A DNA stretch of 64,000 bases, from the sequence record NC_019405.1. The stretch is one strand, 5' to 3'. This document shows, piece by piece, positions 16,722-43,931 of this stretch (position 1 is the stretch's first letter; each line of letters starts with the position of its first letter). The translations under genes and the position numbers were made by a program. The notes under the pieces are model-generated. The model saw only the letters and a list, made by a program, of their open reading frames with translations, was not told where the DNA came from and made no database searches.

Positions 16722-17026
16722 TTGGCGGCGGCCTCCATCCTGAGGGTGATGATTTCCTGGCGCAGGCGCTCGTTCTCGCTCCGCAGCCGTTCGAGAGGGT
16801 CGGTGATCGCCCGGACGCGCGCGTCGATCAGGGCCTTCTCCTCGGGCGAGCGCCACTGGTAGCCGTGATAGAGGACGCTCAGCAGGTTGACCTTGCCGCT
16901 GCCGGCGACGATCTTGCCCCGCGTCTTGAGCCATTCCGCCGCCGCCGCCTCATGCAGGAGCCAGGGCGTGGGATGCAGGGGAAGCAGGCGCGCCGGGATC
17001 GGCGCGCCATGGTGGTCCAGGATCAA
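16718..17026 (-). CDS. hypothetical protein (102 aa)
   Basis: TTG overlaps the upstream TGA. Confidence 0.7.
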   Translation of the reverse strand: MILDHHGAPIPARLLPLHPTPWLLHEAAAAEWLKTRGKIVAGSGKVNLLSVLYHGYQWRSPEEKALIDARVRAITDPLERLRSENERLRQEIITLRMEAAAK

Positions 17027-18444
17027 ATCAGCGCTCCTTGGCTCGGATCGGCCGGCGCGTAGACGGCGCGGTTGATGGTGGTCTCCGGCTCGCCCGAGCG
17101 CTTGTTGGCGCCGTGACGCTTGATCGTGGCCCGGATGGCGTAGCGCTTGCCGGCCTCGGGACGGTACTTGCCGGTGTGGAAGTTCACCACCGCCGAGCCG
17201 TCGTCGCAGCGGATGGCCACGATGCAGGTCGTCTCGCCGAAGTCGTTGGTGTAGAGGTTGGTCCGCACGACCTCGCCCACGAAGTCCACGCGCTGGCCCT
17301 CGGCGGCGTCGAGGTGCTTGGCAGGCGGGCGCTGGGGAGCGTCGGCCTTCTTGCGGGCGTCCTCCTCGCGCTCCAGGACGCGGCCGACCGACAGACCGAC
17401 AGCGGCGACGATCACCCCGATGCGCTTGACCAGGACGAAATCTTCCTGGGCGAGCACCATCTTGATGTTCTCGTGGAACGGATTGCCCGGCTTCAGCGAG
17501 CGGATGTAGTCGGTGAAGCCCTCGCGGTCGAATTCCGGCTCGAAGCCCTTGTAGGAGTCGATGATCTCCTGGTTGCGCTTGCGCTCGTAGTCCGACAGGC
17601 CATAGCCCCGGTTGCCGAACATCAGCAGGCCGACATGCTTGCGCGAGTCTTCCTTGCTGTAGCCGCCGAGCCGGCGCGCCACGCGGTACGAGGTCCGCAG
17701 GAGTTCGCCCAGATCGACGTACTCCTCGCCCTTGCGCCAGCCGCCCGGATCACCCTTGAAGTTGTTCAGGTCATCCCAGAACGACAGCATGCGGACCGGA
17801 TCGGCCCCCATATAGGCTTTCAGGCACGAGGCCCCGATCATCTTGATCCCGTCGGCGGTCTCGCAGACGAAGGTGTGTTTGCGGCGCTGGTTGACGCCGC
17901 AGTGGGCGCACTCGCCAGCGTGTACACGCATCCCTTCCACGACGTCGTTGGCGGTCTTGTCGACCAGCTTGAGGTAGTGCCCCGTCTTCTCGGCGGCTTC
18001 GTAGATGCCCAGGACGCGGCCCTTCTCGCCGACCATCGGCGGAACCGACAGGGTGATCTCGATGCGGCGCACCACCATGGCCTCGTCGCTCAGATAGGGC
18101 GAGGGAATGTCGACCACCTTGCGCTCCAGGACCTCCAGGGTCTGGGCGCCGTGGGCGGCCCGCTTCTGGAGCTTGGCCAGCAGGCGCATGAAGCGTTCCT
18201 CGACGGCGAAGCCCATCATGAAGGTCAGGACGGCTTGGCCGTCGCGCACGCCTTCCTGGGCCTCCCACATGGCGGTTCGGTGAGCCTCGCGCTCCTGCTC
18301 GTCCTCGAAGATCGACACGCCCCTGGCGGTCACGACCTCGACGCCGTCGACCAGCACGCTGGCCTGATCGGCGACCGTCTCGGGACGCTCACCGTAGGTT
18401 TCCAGCATGTAGTCCTGGTAGCTGCCTTCGAATTCGCCAAACAT
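17023..18444 (-). CDS. 473-aa protein with Zn-ribbon-like motif and probable C-terminal OB fold
   Basis: CAHCGVNQRR...IGASCL; C-terminal beta-rich GQRVDFVGEVVR...YAIRATIKRH...ETTINRA. Confidence 0.8.
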   Translation of the reverse strand: MFGEFEGSYQDYMLETYGERPETVADQASVLVDGVEVVTARGVSIFEDEQEREAHRTAMWEAQEGVRDGQAVLTFMMGFAVEERFMRLLAKLQKRAAHGAQTLEVLERKVVDIPSPYLSDEAMVVRRIEITLSVPPMVGEKGRVLGIYEAAEKTGHYLKLVDKTANDVVEGMRVHAGECAHCGVNQRRKHTFVCETADGIKMIGASCLKAYMGADPVRMLSFWDDLNNFKGDPGGWRKGEEYVDLGELLRTSYRVARRLGGYSKEDSRKHVGLLMFGNRGYGLSDYERKRNQEIIDSYKGFEPEFDREGFTDYIRSLKPGNPFHENIKMVLAQEDFVLVKRIGVIVAAVGLSVGRVLEREEDARKKADAPQRPPAKHLDAAEGQRVDFVGEVVRTNLYTNDFGETTCIVAIRCDDGSAVVNFHTGKYRPEAGKRYAIRATIKRHGANKRSGEPETTINRAVYAPADPSQGALI

Positions 18445-35180: not shown

Positions 35181-35422
35181 GGCTCGACCTTCCGGACAGT
35201 GTAGGAGAATTCGTCGTGGACGCGACCGTCGAAACTAGCCTCGTAGCCGGGGCCGAGTTCGGCCAGGATGCGCGCCTCGATCTCGGCGAAGTCGATTTTC
35301 GCCATCGCCTGTTCGGCCGCCCGCATCTGCTGGAGGAAGCCGTCCTTGATCTGGCGCCCCGCCTCGGTGCGGATCGGGATGTTCTGGATCGGCGGCTCGG
35401 ATTTCGACAGACGCTCGCCCAT
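35177..35422 (-). CDS. 81-aa mini-protein made of family A DNA polymerase palm motifs
   Basis: RLSKSEPPIQNIPIRTEAGRQIKDGF, DFAEIEARILA, VHDEF in Pol I order; coupled to gcrA (TGATG) and the downstream gene (ATGA). Confidence 0.8.
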   Translation of the reverse strand: MGERLSKSEPPIQNIPIRTEAGRQIKDGFLQQMRAAEQAMAKIDFAEIEARILAELGPGYEASFDGRVHDEFSYTVRKVEP

Positions 35423-35970
35423 CAGGCCCTCCGGCGATAGACCCGCACCGGGCGGGTGGGGAGGCGTTTCTCGGGCGGCTTGTAGGCGACCAGGGCATGG
35501 CTGATGCAGTAGACGCCTGCCTTGGCGCGGCACCCGCAATGGCCAAAGTCCGGCGAGTTCGGGTCGCCATAGGGCCAGCGGCACATTCCGCGCTTGAGTT
35601 CGGCCGTCGCGAACAGCCGCGCCGGGCGCGGCGGGATGACCGCCGTTCCTTCGGGGACCAGGGCGAGCTTGGGCTTGGCCGGCGGAGCGGGCTTTTCGAC
35701 CTTCTTGGGCTTGCGCGCCGTGGCCTTCTTGACCTTGCGGACCTGGATGCCCAGGCCGCGCGTCTTCTTGCGGCGGGCGGTCGGAGGCGGAACCTTCTCG
35801 CCCAGTTCGCCGGCGGCCTTCAGTCGGTCGGCCTTGCCGCAGACGGCGCTCTTGGTGCGCGGCACGCTCAGGCGCTGACCGATCTCCTTGGTCCCGACCG
35901 GCTCCGCCCAGAGCTTCTTGAGCAGGGCGATGTCCTCGTCCGGCCAGTCGGAATTCCGCTTCTTCACCAC
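35422..35970 (-). CDS. gcrA: GcrA cell-cycle regulator homologue
   Basis: W.DE.IALLKKLW...EIG..L...TKSAVCGKA.RL N-terminal HTH; CRWP.GDP...F..CG...YC..H...AY C-terminal domain. Confidence 0.93.
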   Translation of the reverse strand: MVKKRNSDWPDEDIALLKKLWAEPVGTKEIGQRLSVPRTKSAVCGKADRLKAAGELGEKVPPPTARRKKTRGLGIQVRKVKKATARKPKKVEKPAPPAKPKLALVPEGTAVIPPRPARLFATAELKRGMCRWPYGDPNSPDFGHCGCRAKAGVYCISHALVAYKPPEKRLPTRPVRVYRRRA

Positions 35971-36178: not shown

Positions 36179-36207
36179 ACCCTAGAGGAGCGTTCGAGTG
36201 TTGACAA
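36179..36207 (-). promoter_or_regulatory. leftward promoter of the divergent switch (spacer-operator type)
   Basis: TTGTCA-ACACTCGAACGCTCCTC(17)-TAGGGT. Confidence 0.65.
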
Positions 36208-36220
36208 GCACCAATGTCGC

Positions 36221-36279
36221 TGGCTTTCGAGTGTTGACAAGTCCGGTGCTCGTCTATAGGGGAGACCGGGACGACAACG
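36221..36279 (+). promoter_or_regulatory. rightward promoter cassette of the divergent switch
   Basis: TGGCT-TTCGA-GTGTTGACA-17-TAGGGG then GACGACAACG. Confidence 0.85.
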
Positions 36280-40341: not shown

Positions 40342-41060
40342 ACGACGAGATCAAGAGAACCCACGAGGCCTACGGGATCATCGGCTATAGCCACACCCAG
40401 GGCGACACCGATCTGGTCGGCGTCGACTACGCCCAGGGCCACTATGTGACCCTGACGATCAAGACGGCCGTCGCCTATGAGGGCGAGACCCATGACCGCT
40501 TCCACGGCGACAAGTACATCTGCAAGGTGGCGATGAGCGAGGTCCAGTGGGCCGCCTTCATCGCCAATCCGAACCGGGGCGACGGCGTGCCTTGCACCTT
40601 GCAGTTCTATCGCGATCCGCTGACCGGCGAGACCAAGCACCCAAAGTATCATCGCGAGCAAATGACCCGCGTCGAGCGCACCCGCGAGGCCGTCACCGCC
40701 CGCGCCAAGGCCCTGTCGACCAAGGTCAAGGAGGCCCAGGCCGAGCTTCAGAGGTTGATGGACGGCGGCCCGATCAAGAAGGGCGATCTGAAGACGCTCA
40801 AGGACCTGCTCTACTTCGCCAACCAGGACATGGAGTCGAACCTCGGCTACTTCGTCGAGCGGGTGGAGGAGACCATCGACAAGGCGGTGGTCGACGCCAA
40901 GGCCCAGGTCGACGCCCACGTCGACTTCGTGGTTCGCGAACTGGGGGTGCGGGCTCTGGGCGCGCGGCTCCAGGAGGCCATCGACGCGGGGCATGATCCT
41001 GGCGCCGTGGGGCAGGCCCTGATCGGGCTCGTGGCACCGCCGGAGGCAGACCCGACGTGA
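40338..41060 (+). CDS. hypothetical phage protein (240 aa)
   Basis: HEAYG.I, MSE.QWA.F...N.G.GVPCTL motif, coiled C-terminus. Confidence 0.8.
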   Translation: MNDEIKRTHEAYGIIGYSHTQGDTDLVGVDYAQGHYVTLTIKTAVAYEGETHDRFHGDKYICKVAMSEVQWAAFIANPNRGDGVPCTLQFYRDPLTGETKHPKYHREQMTRVERTREAVTARAKALSTKVKEAQAELQRLMDGGPIKKGDLKTLKDLLYFANQDMESNLGYFVERVEETIDKAVVDAKAQVDAHVDFVVRELGVRALGARLQEAIDAGHDPGAVGQALIGLVAPPEADPT

Positions 41061-41806: not shown

Positions 41807-41865
41807 TGGCGCGAAAGTGTTGACAGCCTGAAGGGACTCCTCTACACCCACGCTCGACGACAACG
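41807..41865 (+). promoter_or_regulatory. phage promoter cassette (upstream-operator type)
   Basis: TGGCG-CGAAA-GTGTTGACA-17-TACACC then CGACGACAACG; GANTC in the spacer. Confidence 0.85.
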
Positions 41866-41877
41866 AGAGGAGTTCCC

Positions 41878-43638
41878 ATGGCCGAGACCATGTCCCTGAG
41901 TTTCCGGATCGAAGGCGCCGCTCTGGTGGAGCGGGCGCGCGATCGCGTCATCGAAGGTAACTGGGAGCACGGCCTGCGCATCCTGGTCGAGGGCCTGCAC
42001 GGCATGTCCTACGAACTCGCGATCGACATCCTGCTTGGCAAGCACACCCTGGGCGGCTGGTCCTCGGACCCCGAGGGCGTCTATCTCACCGACCAGGACC
42101 CGGAGGACGAGACTTTCAAGCGCTACAAGGAAACCCTCGACTACCAGTTTGCCGGCGTCTTCAAGCTGGACGACGGCCGGATCATGCGCCCCTACGCGGT
42201 GGTCGACAGCTTCTCCAAGATCGACTTCGACTCTAGGGTCCGCTTCCTGCGGCTGGCCCAGGGCTCGGACCCGGTGTTCTCGCGCCCCAAGCGCTATCAC
42301 GACCCCCGCGCCGAGATCAACGGCGAGGAGATCGACTGGGCCTATCGCGCCCTGCACTATGCCGACGAGCCGACCCAGGACATCGTCCGGCTGGTCCGCA
42401 TGGAGGGCTTCCATCCCTCGATCCGGGCGGCGGTCCTATTCAAGGAAGTCCGCGACTATCCCAAGCTCCTGCTCCCGAAGGTCGAGACCGACGCCCAGAA
42501 GGCCGTCGACGTGGCGATCAAGGCCCAACGCGGCCTCTCCAAGCGTGGGCACGTCTACGAGTACGGCGCCGGTCAGGACTTCGACAAGGAGCACTACAAG
42601 ACCACCATGGGGATCGATCAGGTCCCCACCGCGTGGTCCGTGCGCAATCCGAAGTACGTCGATCCCGACGCCAAGTTCGTGAAGGACACCCTGGCCGAGA
42701 TCGACGGCGACAAGCGCCCGGCGCCGGCCGGTGATTACGCCGGCGCCATGAACCGGATGATCAAGGATGAGATGGACGGCGGCATGGACATCAGCGCGGC
42801 CGTCGCCATGACCCAGGCCAAGATGGCGCTGCTGGGCGGCATGGCCGAGGACCCCGAGCAGCGCCTGCGGGCGATCAACGACGCCTACGCCGCCAAGTAC
42901 GAGAAGGCCGAGGGCCGCAGCGTCGAGGAGTACCGCAAGGCCATCATCGCCCAGGCCGGCGATGATTTCTTTGATCTCGCGTACACGGATGTGAACGGCA
43001 AGGACGTCGTCCTGAAGGTCCCGACCGCGCCGTTCGAGCAGTGGGCGCTCTGGCGCACGGCCGGCTCCCACCTCGCCAAGCCCTGGAAGCGGGTGACCTA
43101 CACCGGCTTCAAGACGTTCGGCGATGACCCCTATCACACCGACTGGGTGCTGGGCGCCGGGCTCAATCCCGAGGATTGGCCGATCATCGAGGCCGACAAC
43201 CCGCCGCTCCACAAGGCCGCCTGGGACAAGCGCTTCCGGCTGGCCGAGGAGAAGCTGGGCGGCAACATGCGCGTCCTGCTCGGCAAGGGCTTCGTGACCG
43301 GCAAGATCGTGATGCTCAAGCCGGGCGAGGCCCTGTCACCGGGCGAGATCGGTGTGATCCGCAACGCCGGCCCCGACTACGTTCAGGCCGCCCAGAGCGC
43401 GATCGAGCACAACACCGCCTTGATCTGCGAGAACGGCGGCAGCGTCGCCCACCTCGTGGTCGAGTACCTGGACAAGCCCCTGCGCCTGACCCGGATCGAG
43501 AACGCGCGCAAGATTTTCAAGGACGGCATGACCGTCTACCTCGACTTTGACAAGTCGACGCGAGAGATCGCCAAGGGCGGCCTGGGGCCGAGCCCTGCCG
43601 ATCTTGGCCTCGACACGGAATGGGAGATTTTCGAATGA
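41878..43638 (+). CDS. 586-aa protein with C-terminal PEP-utiliser mobile (phosphohistidine swivel) domain
   Basis: G.VTGKI...PGEIGVI...GP......ALICENGGSVAHL...IENA...FKDGMTVYLD. Confidence 0.75.
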   Translation: MAETMSLSFRIEGAALVERARDRVIEGNWEHGLRILVEGLHGMSYELAIDILLGKHTLGGWSSDPEGVYLTDQDPEDETFKRYKETLDYQFAGVFKLDDGRIMRPYAVVDSFSKIDFDSRVRFLRLAQGSDPVFSRPKRYHDPRAEINGEEIDWAYRALHYADEPTQDIVRLVRMEGFHPSIRAAVLFKEVRDYPKLLLPKVETDAQKAVDVAIKAQRGLSKRGHVYEYGAGQDFDKEHYKTTMGIDQVPTAWSVRNPKYVDPDAKFVKDTLAEIDGDKRPAPAGDYAGAMNRMIKDEMDGGMDISAAVAMTQAKMALLGGMAEDPEQRLRAINDAYAAKYEKAEGRSVEEYRKAIIAQAGDDFFDLAYTDVNGKDVVLKVPTAPFEQWALWRTAGSHLAKPWKRVTYTGFKTFGDDPYHTDWVLGAGLNPEDWPIIEADNPPLHKAAWDKRFRLAEEKLGGNMRVLLGKGFVTGKIVMLKPGEALSPGEIGVIRNAGPDYVQAAQSAIEHNTALICENGGSVAHLVVEYLDKPLRLTRIENARKIFKDGMTVYLDFDKSTREIAKGGLGPSPADLGLDTEWEIFE

Positions 43639-43931
43639 GCGAGAAGTGGCAACCGGTGGAGGAAGCCGCCAATAACCTCTCCGGCTGGAACGTGCGCTCG
43701 GCCCAGATGGCGGTCGCCGGCGGGACCCTCTATCGGACGATCGTCTCGCGCGACAGCCAGGGCGCCGCGCCGGCGGTGAGCACCACCTTCGTCCCGGACG
43801 CCGCGCCGCAGTTCACCGTCCAGGTGACCGACGAGGACCTCCGGAGCCTTGCCGAGTGCAAGGACGTCGCCAGGGCGCGCAGCCTGTTCCGGGGCATCCT
43901 GAAGGCCCACGGCCTGGAGATCATCGCCTAG
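43635..43931 (+). CDS. hypothetical protein (98 aa), paralogue of 35978-36157
   Basis: KWQPV...MAVAGGTLYR...TTFVP. Confidence 0.75.
   Translation: MSEKWQPVEEAANNLSGWNVRSAQMAVAGGTLYRTIVSRDSQGAAPAVSTTFVPDAAPQFTVQVTDEDLRSLAECKDVARARSLFRGILKAHGLEIIA

Follow-up and report, generated by a model that had tools for sequence, protein, structure and literature searches.

Nearly all known swivel phospho-histidine domains belong to enzymes of central metabolism, namely phosphoenolpyruvate (PEP) synthase, pyruvate phosphate dikinase (PPDK) and Enzyme I of the phosphotransferase system (PTS), or to one of a handful of small-molecule dikinases (e.g. rifampin phosphotransferase and the phenol or hydroxyphenylethanone kinases). 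To our knowledge, the known swivel domains pair with either an ATP-grasp domain or a PEP barrel. Split dikinases, in which the swivel histidine resides on a separate polypeptide, are established as well (PMC12167813). Here, we analyzed the protein gp239 of Caulobacter phage phiCbK, which is encoded in a stretch of 64,000 nucleotides from sequence record NC_019405.1 (hereafter called the window; it is 100% identical to phiCbK, and its position 41000 is position 165000 of the phage genome). What is new in this protein and its relatives is the combination of a known catalytic module with two conserved domains that have no detectable relatives, in the absence of the canonical partners. As judged from our analysis, gp239 would represent, in phiCbK, a large family of three-domain phospho-histidine phosphotransferases that is apparently restricted to phages, a reading to which we give an even chance of being correct.

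The coding sequence of gp239 occupies positions 41878–43638 on the plus strand and specifies 586 amino acids plus the stop codon from an ATG start, in exact agreement with the open reading frame (ORF) call. The protein is deposited as AFU87071.1 (CbK_gp239, GenBank) and YP_006988135.1 (D865_gp179, RefSeq), in both cases as 'hypothetical protein', and matches over its full length phrog_11532, a PHROG of unknown function into which all relatives tested fall as well. The domain call presented below is already implicit in automatic annotation, as the UniRef name of the phiCbK-group proteins is 'PEP-utilising enzyme mobile domain-containing' and two Vibrio phage records read 'PEP-utilizing enzyme'. 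The phrog_11532 family itself is uncharacterized, and our literature search returned no paper on this family, on gp239, or on the promoters or GANTC sites of phiCbK.

The C-terminal region of gp239 is a swivel domain

A first-pass annotation of the locus had assigned the C-terminal ~100 residues of gp239 to the PEP-utiliser mobile domain with the phospho-accepting histidine retained. The sequence of gp239 alone gave no match to the corresponding Pfam entry PF00391 even at E ≤ 10, the only Pfam match being DUF7097 at an E-value of 0.079; a phmmer search of the Protein Data Bank (PDB) returned nothing, and the matches in NCBIfam, among them PRK06354, were marginal only. Since searches with the single sequence were uninformative, a family profile was needed. 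A word-indexed homologue search yielded 18 relatives, many of them with precomputed PF00391 matches, and the domain (IPR008279) was matched individually by 13 of these 18 and then by 82 of 88 homologues, with a best E-value of 3e-13. When searched against the PDB, the family profile matched PEP synthase (2OLS, E 5e-13), rifampin phosphotransferase (5FBS, E 1.6e-12) and the extra C-terminal domain of Geobacillus pyruvate kinase (2E28, E 1.3e-11), and the invariant histidine of the family aligned with the catalytic histidine in the PDB profile matches. Alignment of the family profile to E. coli PEP synthase (PpsA) by hhalign placed H525 on the catalytic histidine with 96.9% probability (E 1.3e-10, PpsA residues 375–459). 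The same comparison with E. coli Enzyme I (PtsI) likewise aligned the histidine and reached a probability of 10% (E 3e-3).

These results from Pfam and PDB profiles and from hhalign, together with structure prediction, delimit the swivel domain to residues 463–566 (positions 43264–43575, plus strand). An AlphaFold2 model of the phiCbK protein, which was built on an alignment of the 88 sequences, has a mean predicted local distance difference test (pLDDT) score of 80.9, and this score is about 95 in residues 463–566. In the model, H525 is located at the N-terminus of a short helix (residues 525–529) that follows the strand 514–519 and a Gly-Gly loop. The best Foldseek match of the model was rifampin phosphotransferase with an E-value of 2e-5, with 109 columns of the structure 5hv1 superimposed at 2.7 Å and 23% identity. 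Other matches comprised the aconitase X small subunit, dihydroxy-acid dehydratase, the N-domain of S66 peptidase and the N-domain of the carbamoyl phosphate synthetase small subunit, domains that share the swivelling β/β/α fold. This fold is hence borne out for residues 463–566 by both AlphaFold2 and Foldseek.

The sequence signature of the domain is C517-E-N-G520-G521-S-V-A-H525 (positions 43426–43452, plus strand), in which the string ENGGSVAH corresponds to residues 518–525 and the codon CAC at 43450–43452 specifies H525. It follows the pattern T/S-x-x-G-G-x-x-x-H that was defined for the swivel domains of dikinases (PMC12167813) and that is kept in the consensus of the family, where position 517 is threonine instead of the cysteine found in phiCbK. 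Conservation was assessed in the 88 sequences, a diverse set of which most are 24–38% identical to gp239. Only five residues of the protein, namely P105, H420, D422, G520 and H525, are invariant in this alignment, and G521 is conserved in 95% of the sequences. The invariance of G520 and H525 across 88 divergent sequences is the constraint expected of a catalytic phospho-carrier. Hence, the swivel domain with its phospho-accepting histidine is real at the level of the family: what the sequence of gp239 did not reveal on its own was recovered by the family profile and in 82 of the 88 members, and the initial domain assignment holds.

Two conserved domains and a dispensable insert precede the swivel domain

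The remainder of gp239 had been described as a 470-residue unknown region. It indeed matches nothing known, yet it is not one block, since it consists of two conserved domains separated by a dispensable insert. The N domain (residues 8–225; positions 41899–42552, plus strand) is an alpha/beta domain present in 153 of 161 retrieved homologues, and its conserved residues are F9, R21, G54, the invariant P105, D116, R157, Y161, P195 and G224. The M domain (residues 346–462; 42913–43263, plus strand) is composed of a beta-hairpin and helices and occurs in all 161 homologues. It contains the motif K412-x3-D416-D-P-Y-H420-T-D422 (43111–43143, plus strand), in which H420 and D422 are found in all and K412 and D416 in at least 97% of the 88 sequences, so that the M domain is a candidate catalytic or docking site. 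In between lies a partly helical insert or linker (residues 226–345; 42553–42912, plus strand) that is confined to the phiCbK group (P0001–P0004 of the 161 homologues) and shows an occupancy of 0.48 and low conservation in the 88-sequence alignment.

The ratio of nonsynonymous to synonymous substitution rates (dN/dS) between gp239 and its counterpart in phage CcrBL10 is 0.22 for the N domain, 0.89 for the insert, 0.14 for the M domain and 0.10 for the C-terminal swivel domain. The insert overall has values of 0.84–0.89. The N and M domains are thus under purifying selection and the insert evolves near-neutrally. The mean frequency of the most common residue is 0.35–0.44 in the N and M domains versus 0.46 in the swivel domain, and neither the insert nor the C-terminal tail is conserved. 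Charged residues that are invariant or nearly so in the N and M domains are R21, D116, R157, K412, D416, H420 and D422. The comparison with CcrBL10 (L008) also reveals a mosaic, in which the N domain has a synonymous rate (dS) of 0.63 and 79% amino acid identity, and the M and C-terminal parts have a dS of about 0.2, with the M domain 95% identical. This pattern suggests a recent recombination event that would have exchanged the half of the gene encoding M and the swivel domain.

A structural look at the N-terminal region, as proposed in the first-pass annotation, yielded N and M domains that AlphaFold2 models for the most part with confidence, but no known fold matched them. The pLDDT of the N domain is about 94–97 over residues 11–110, 46–65 around residues 121–150 and 77–96 over residues 151–225; that of the M domain is 95–97 over residues 351–390 and 70–96 over residues 391–460. 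In the insert the values are mostly low and drop below 50 at residues 238–263 and 275–284. Neither N nor M found a match in Pfam, NCBIfam, the PDB profile search or Foldseek, and when two full-length models were searched with Foldseek in the PDB and BFVD, only the swivel fold and two full-length members of the family were returned. Homology searches restricted to either region, whose sensitivity is limited by the word index, recovered only family members and hence no other architecture that contains N or M.

We also looked for the domains that normally charge a swivel histidine. No credible ATP-grasp match was obtained with Pfam or NCBIfam in the 88 members, and none was among the matches of the PDB profile or of Foldseek, the latter with a model that reaches a pLDDT of 94–97 over most of the N domain; a match to ATP-grasp_2 in one member at an E-value of 0.03 is noise. 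The PEP barrel, that is, the PEP-utilisers C-terminal domain, was detected by none of Pfam, the PDB profile search, hhalign and Foldseek. In the hhalign comparison with full-length PpsA the swivel domain alone aligned and PpsA residues 470–792 matched nothing, and the Foldseek alignments to rifampin phosphotransferase extend past the swivel domain only at a root mean square deviation above 11 Å. That neither partner is recognizable, as had been noted from the sequence of gp239 at the outset, is therefore confirmed at the level of profiles and structures.

Single homologues depart from the three-domain architecture. A complete protein of 235 residues (P0157; L031:392-1099, on a metagenome contig) consists of M and the swivel domain only and lacks N. 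Its gene starts right after the 3′ end of an ORF resembling tyrosine recombinases (integrase-like), and it may be a minimal version of the family that resides on an integrating element. This homologue, found on a single short contig, suggests that M plus the swivel domain form the functional core. In a further metagenomic protein (P0110, 468 residues), a unit of M and the swivel domain precedes a stretch that weakly matches the first ~50 residues of the N domain (E 0.004), an arrangement that could reflect tandem paralogues or a fused gene call. The odd architecture of a third protein (P0063) was dismissed because the contig end truncates it, and the 274-residue tail of a fourth (P0154) has no Pfam match and no informative context.

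The family is large and occurs in phage-like genomes

An exhaustive search of 1.84 billion representatives yielded 730 clusters at E ≤ 1e-3, 517 of them at E ≤ 1e-10, and among the best 150 of the 730 clusters nearly all proteins have a length of 430–600 residues. The family therefore spans at least 730 sequence clusters, in phages with genomes from 57 kb to more than 500 kb that infect at least Caulobacter, Brevundimonas and Vibrio. Named carriers are the phiCbK group, Brevundimonas phage Bajun, Caulobacter phage Seuss, several Vibrio phages including Ackermannviridae, and Rctr197k; further homologues reside on IMG/VR contigs of 43–578 kb. The context was phage-like at every locus examined (~25), and on one contig of a metagenome-assembled genome that carries a homologue, the neighbours match PHROGs. 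The family is apparently phage-restricted, the scan of cellular genomes having used a single narrow peptide pattern. Two homologues are located in very large phage-like genomes (L002, a 545-kb contig of GCA_040384025.1, and L005, a 387-kb JGI contig) that encode tRNA synthetases, an ART-PolyVal ADP-ribosyltransferase domain, TelA, flotillin/Band_7, a primase and a RecD2-like helicase.

No gene neighbouring the homologues is conserved. Across 19 loci (± 6–10 kb) no gene family was common to the neighbourhoods outside the phiCbK group, and no downstream gene was conserved in 25 loci. The sole apparent common neighbour 'family' proved to be an artefact of antisense shadow ORFs that overlap the gene itself. 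Furthermore, Vibrio phage 1.232.O, whose genome (57 kb, 79 genes) is annotated by InterPro and carries a homologue, contains no gene annotated as ATP-grasp or PEP barrel. Since there is neither a conserved neighbour nor a partner gene in this phage, the family travels as a single-gene module. A PADLOC search of gp239 and three relatives matched no model at E ≤ 1.

Proposed mode of action and alternatives

In the mechanism that we favor, which is modelled on PEP synthase, PPDK, rifampin phosphotransferase and HpeH, H525 of the C-terminal swivel domain would carry a phosphoryl group, and the domain would swing between a charging site and a site of phosphate delivery. The M domain with H420, D422, K412 and D416 would be the likeliest partner active site, and the N domain may contribute a second site for binding of donor or acceptor, or serve in targeting. 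We infer a self-contained enzyme in which H525 becomes phosphorylated and M and N provide the two sites of transfer. The invariant histidine and the Gly-Gly loop point to a phospho-carrier, and two equally constrained extra domains with invariant lysine, aspartate and histidine residues point to partner active sites. The order of the domains N, M and swivel, with the swivel domain last, is also that of rifampin phosphotransferase (domain roles according to PMC12167813), and the homologue that consists of M and the swivel domain only fits a catalytic core formed by these two. HpeH alone catalyzes phosphotransfer between substrates via its swivel histidine (PMC12167813) and hence sets a precedent for the activity of a protein composed of a substrate domain and a swivel domain. 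A new phosphotransferase with the substrate site upstream of the swivel domain, as in rifampin phosphotransferase, had been one of the two functions suggested in the first-pass annotation, and it is the one that fits best with conserved N and M domains under purifying selection that harbor invariant polar residues.

Taken further, gp239 could represent a new class of self-contained phosphotransferases, in which the N domain, not of the ATP-grasp type, and the M domain with its K/D/H/D residues would form undescribed donor and acceptor sites. Phages of many hosts would then phosphorylate a host small molecule or protein early in infection, be it a metabolite, an immune signalling molecule or a host enzyme, for takeover or counter-defence. 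We consider this extended proposal tentative and, as a whole, rather unlikely. If active, the family would offer both a new way to charge or use a swivel histidine and a new phage phosphorylation activity aimed at the host, and with phiCbK and Caulobacter a tractable laboratory system is at hand.

Several observations speak against a self-contained phosphotransferase. No motif or fold for the binding of nucleotides or PEP was recognized in N or M, which leaves the source of the phosphate unexplained, and the model has a predicted TM-score (pTM) of 0.46, so that no docking geometry of H525 to M or N can be read from it. Moreover, gp239 is a divergent member of its family that misses PF00391 when searched alone and has Cys517 in place of threonine or serine, and the arginine six residues past the histidine, kept by 65% of the family, is lost (L531). 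Domains of the swivel type also exist in non-catalytic or regulatory roles, as in the C-terminal domain of pyruvate kinase, which is among the best sequence matches.

The lack of a recognizable donor-binding fold in gp239 would be accommodated if the protein were the substrate-binding-plus-swivel half of a two-component dikinase, with H525 receiving its phosphate in trans, either from a host enzyme (e.g. the ATP-grasp domain of PEP synthase or PPDK) or from a phage protein encoded at an unlinked locus, before a target bound at the M or N site is phosphorylated. The swivel domain is closest to the class of PpsA and rifampin phosphotransferase, whose histidine is charged by an ATP-grasp domain, the split dikinases mentioned above provide a precedent, and Caulobacter has a PPDK system, as evident from the PPDK regulatory protein CCNA_00001. 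However, the known systems encode the ATP-grasp subunit beside the histidine subunit, and none was found at the 19–25 loci or in Vibrio phage 1.232.O. In addition, neither the PDB profile nor Foldseek linked N or M to the rifampin-binding domain, and the large, conserved N domain would be left without an explanation. On balance we regard charging in trans as unlikely. We are still more doubtful about a non-catalytic role, in which the swivel domain would serve for binding or regulation, a role proposed for the extra C-terminal domain of Bacillus and Geobacillus pyruvate kinase, or would act as a decoy that inhibits PEP-utilising enzymes of the host or their regulator, with N and M conferring the targeting. 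The matches to the pyruvate kinase C-terminal domain (2e28 at E 1.3e-11 and, for gp239, PRK06354 of NCBIfam) and the relaxation of the canonical motif in the phiCbK clade, with its Cys517 and the lost arginine after the histidine, would agree with such a role, but H525 and G520 are absolutely invariant in at least 88 divergent sequences, as are H420 and D422, a pattern more typically seen where chemistry is performed than on a surface used for binding. PEP synthase and PPDK carry a regulatory threonine two residues before the histidine. This position is V523 in gp239 and leucine in the family consensus, with Ala524 directly preceding the histidine, which makes a decoy for the PPDK or PEP synthase regulatory protein (PDRP/PSRP) unlikely.

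The second function that had been suggested for gp239 from its sequence is that of a phosphate sink, which would drain phosphate from EI-Ntr, NPr or EIIA-Ntr of the host onto H525 and thereby alter the signalling of PTS-Ntr to SpoT and lower (p)ppGpp. A phospho-accepting histidine is present and a charging domain of its own is not recognizable, as this idea would demand, and the control of SpoT by PTS-Ntr in Caulobacter was cited as established in the first-pass annotation. The swivel domain is nevertheless of the PpsA type, given the hhalign probabilities reported above for PpsA and Enzyme I; no chain of Enzyme I was among the PDB sequence matches at E ≤ 10, and EIN-Ntr appeared only weakly in Foldseek (E 0.35). 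Enzyme I inserts a helical HPr-binding subdomain in its swivel domain. The swivel domain of gp239 is instead compact and continuous over ~104 residues and lacks this subdomain. Homologues are further present in Vibrio phages and in very large phages whose hosts are unknown, so that the family extends beyond hosts with the PTS-Ntr/SpoT circuit of Caulobacter, and a stoichiometric sink would not need two extra conserved domains with invariant residues of catalytic type. Among all readings the sink fares worst and is highly improbable, and we found no support for a link of gp239 to the host PTS or the stringent response.

The promoter of gp239 is one copy of a phage-wide module

According to the mechanism favored here, gp239 would be expressed from a host-type (sigma-73-like) promoter of its own, within an extended run of small accessory genes. 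The gap upstream of gp239 comprises 79 nt, and the following elements were identified therein on the plus strand. An extended −35 element, AGTGTTGACAG (41816–41826, with TTGACA at 41820–41825), is invariant in phiCbK, Karma, CcrBL10 and CcrRogue. A GANTC site (GACTC, 41835–41839) lies in the promoter spacer and adjoins the −10-like element CTACAC (41842–41847), for which the consensus of the module described below is CTAGAA and which reads CTATAG or CTATAC in relatives. The 5′ leader CGACGACAACGAGAGGAG (41855–41872), which includes the Shine-Dalgarno sequence AGGAG (41868–41872), is conserved upstream of the orthologues and recurs in most module copies. The −35 element, the −10-like element and the leader are all kept in CcrBL10 and CcrRogue despite an identity of only ~78–82% in this region.

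The same arrangement recurs across the phage as a module of the form TGGCG..[A/T]GTGTTGACA[G/A], 14–16 nt, CTA(G/A)AA, 6–10 nt, CGACGACAACGA(G/A)GGAG, 4–7 nt and start codon. With up to two mismatches, the motif matches 22 times in the window, compared to 7.9 matches expected, and the 14 copies with no or one mismatch track the orientation of the genes exactly. Copies of the module are found on the minus strand at 1328, 9526, 13933, 16450, 18496, 22048, 26714, 28226 and 32551, and on the plus strand at 36197, 36230, 38682, 41816, 47111 and 54460. The housekeeping sigma-73 of Caulobacter has the consensus TTGACGS / GCTANAWC. The module resembles this consensus, and it is not described in the genome paper of phiCbK.

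By this sequence evidence, gp239 has its own promoter, and it is a standard one for phiCbK. The first-pass annotation had singled out the promoter for its GANTC site. Both promoter and site are present, but the promoter is one copy of the phage-wide module, and GACTC reads GCCTC in the gp239 promoters of CcrBL10 and CcrRogue, so that GANTC is not required for expression of gp239 across the group. The GANTC sequence, which is the site of CcrM, is depleted about 6-fold in the window, with 57 sites versus ~366 expected. It occurs at the identical spacer position in three copies of the module (9526 and 18496 on the minus strand, 41816 on the plus strand), for which the probability of chance occurrence is ~5e-6, and these three promoters may constitute a subset that responds to methylation by CcrM or to GcrA. 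A GcrA-like protein is encoded by phiCbK itself (D865_gp196; 35422–35970, minus strand). The copy of the module most similar to that of gp239, with GANTC in equal register, belongs to a 473-residue ORF without Pfam match (17023–18444, minus strand).

As for its surroundings, gp239 sits within a long co-directional run of small hypothetical genes downstream of a strand switch at ~36 kb. Two tandem copies of the module spaced by 33 nt (36197–36240, plus strand) are located at this strand switch, just downstream of the divergent GcrA-like gene, and both AT and GC skew reverse sign in the same region. The gene downstream of gp239, gp240 (98 residues; 43635–43931, plus strand), overlaps with its start the stop codon of gp239 (ATGA) and is probably co-transcribed with gp239 while lying outside the conserved unit; it has no Pfam match, and its conservation is confined to phages of the phiCbK group. 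The phiCbK neighbours gp236–243 have no Pfam match either. A hairpin at 42943–42966 resembles a terminator, but it is attributable to chance, as it lies inside the coding sequence and one such hairpin was found compared to 2.8 expected.

Comparison with known phosphotransfer systems

When compared to characterized swivel proteins, gp239 shares with rifampin phosphotransferase (RPH-Lm of Listeria, 5FBS/5HV1) and the wider PRK06241 group of 'PEP synthase-like' small-molecule dikinases the arrangement in which the partner domains come first and the swivel domain last. It differs in that the family has no ATP-grasp domain and no detectable domain of the rifampin-binding type, its N and M domains being unmatched, and in that its members are shorter, with ~450–590 residues compared to ~860 in rifampin phosphotransferase, and were encountered in phage-like loci only. 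HpeHI, CreHI and the phenylphosphate synthase PpsAB resemble gp239 in carrying a C-terminal swivel histidine, with the signature that the family consensus keeps, and no ATP-grasp domain on the same polypeptide. Unlike in these systems, no gene for an ATP-grasp subunit is adjacent at the loci examined, and the N-terminal region of gp239 is not detectably homologous to the substrate domain of HpeH or rifampin phosphotransferase.

The swivel domain of gp239 belongs to the same subclass as that of PEP synthase and PPDK, but the N-terminal ATP-grasp domain and the C-terminal PEP/pyruvate barrel of these enzymes are both missing. A C-terminal domain of the swivel type without either partner is likewise found in the pyruvate kinases of Geobacillus and Staphylococcus (2E28, 3T05), although the rest of gp239 is not a pyruvate kinase and the matches to 2e28, 3t05 and PRK06354 span the C-terminal ~90 residues only. 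With Enzyme I of the PTS and EI-Ntr, gp239 has the superfamily of phospho-histidine swivel domains in common; the match is marginal, the helical HPr-binding subdomain is missing and Pfam found no PEP-binding domain in gp239.

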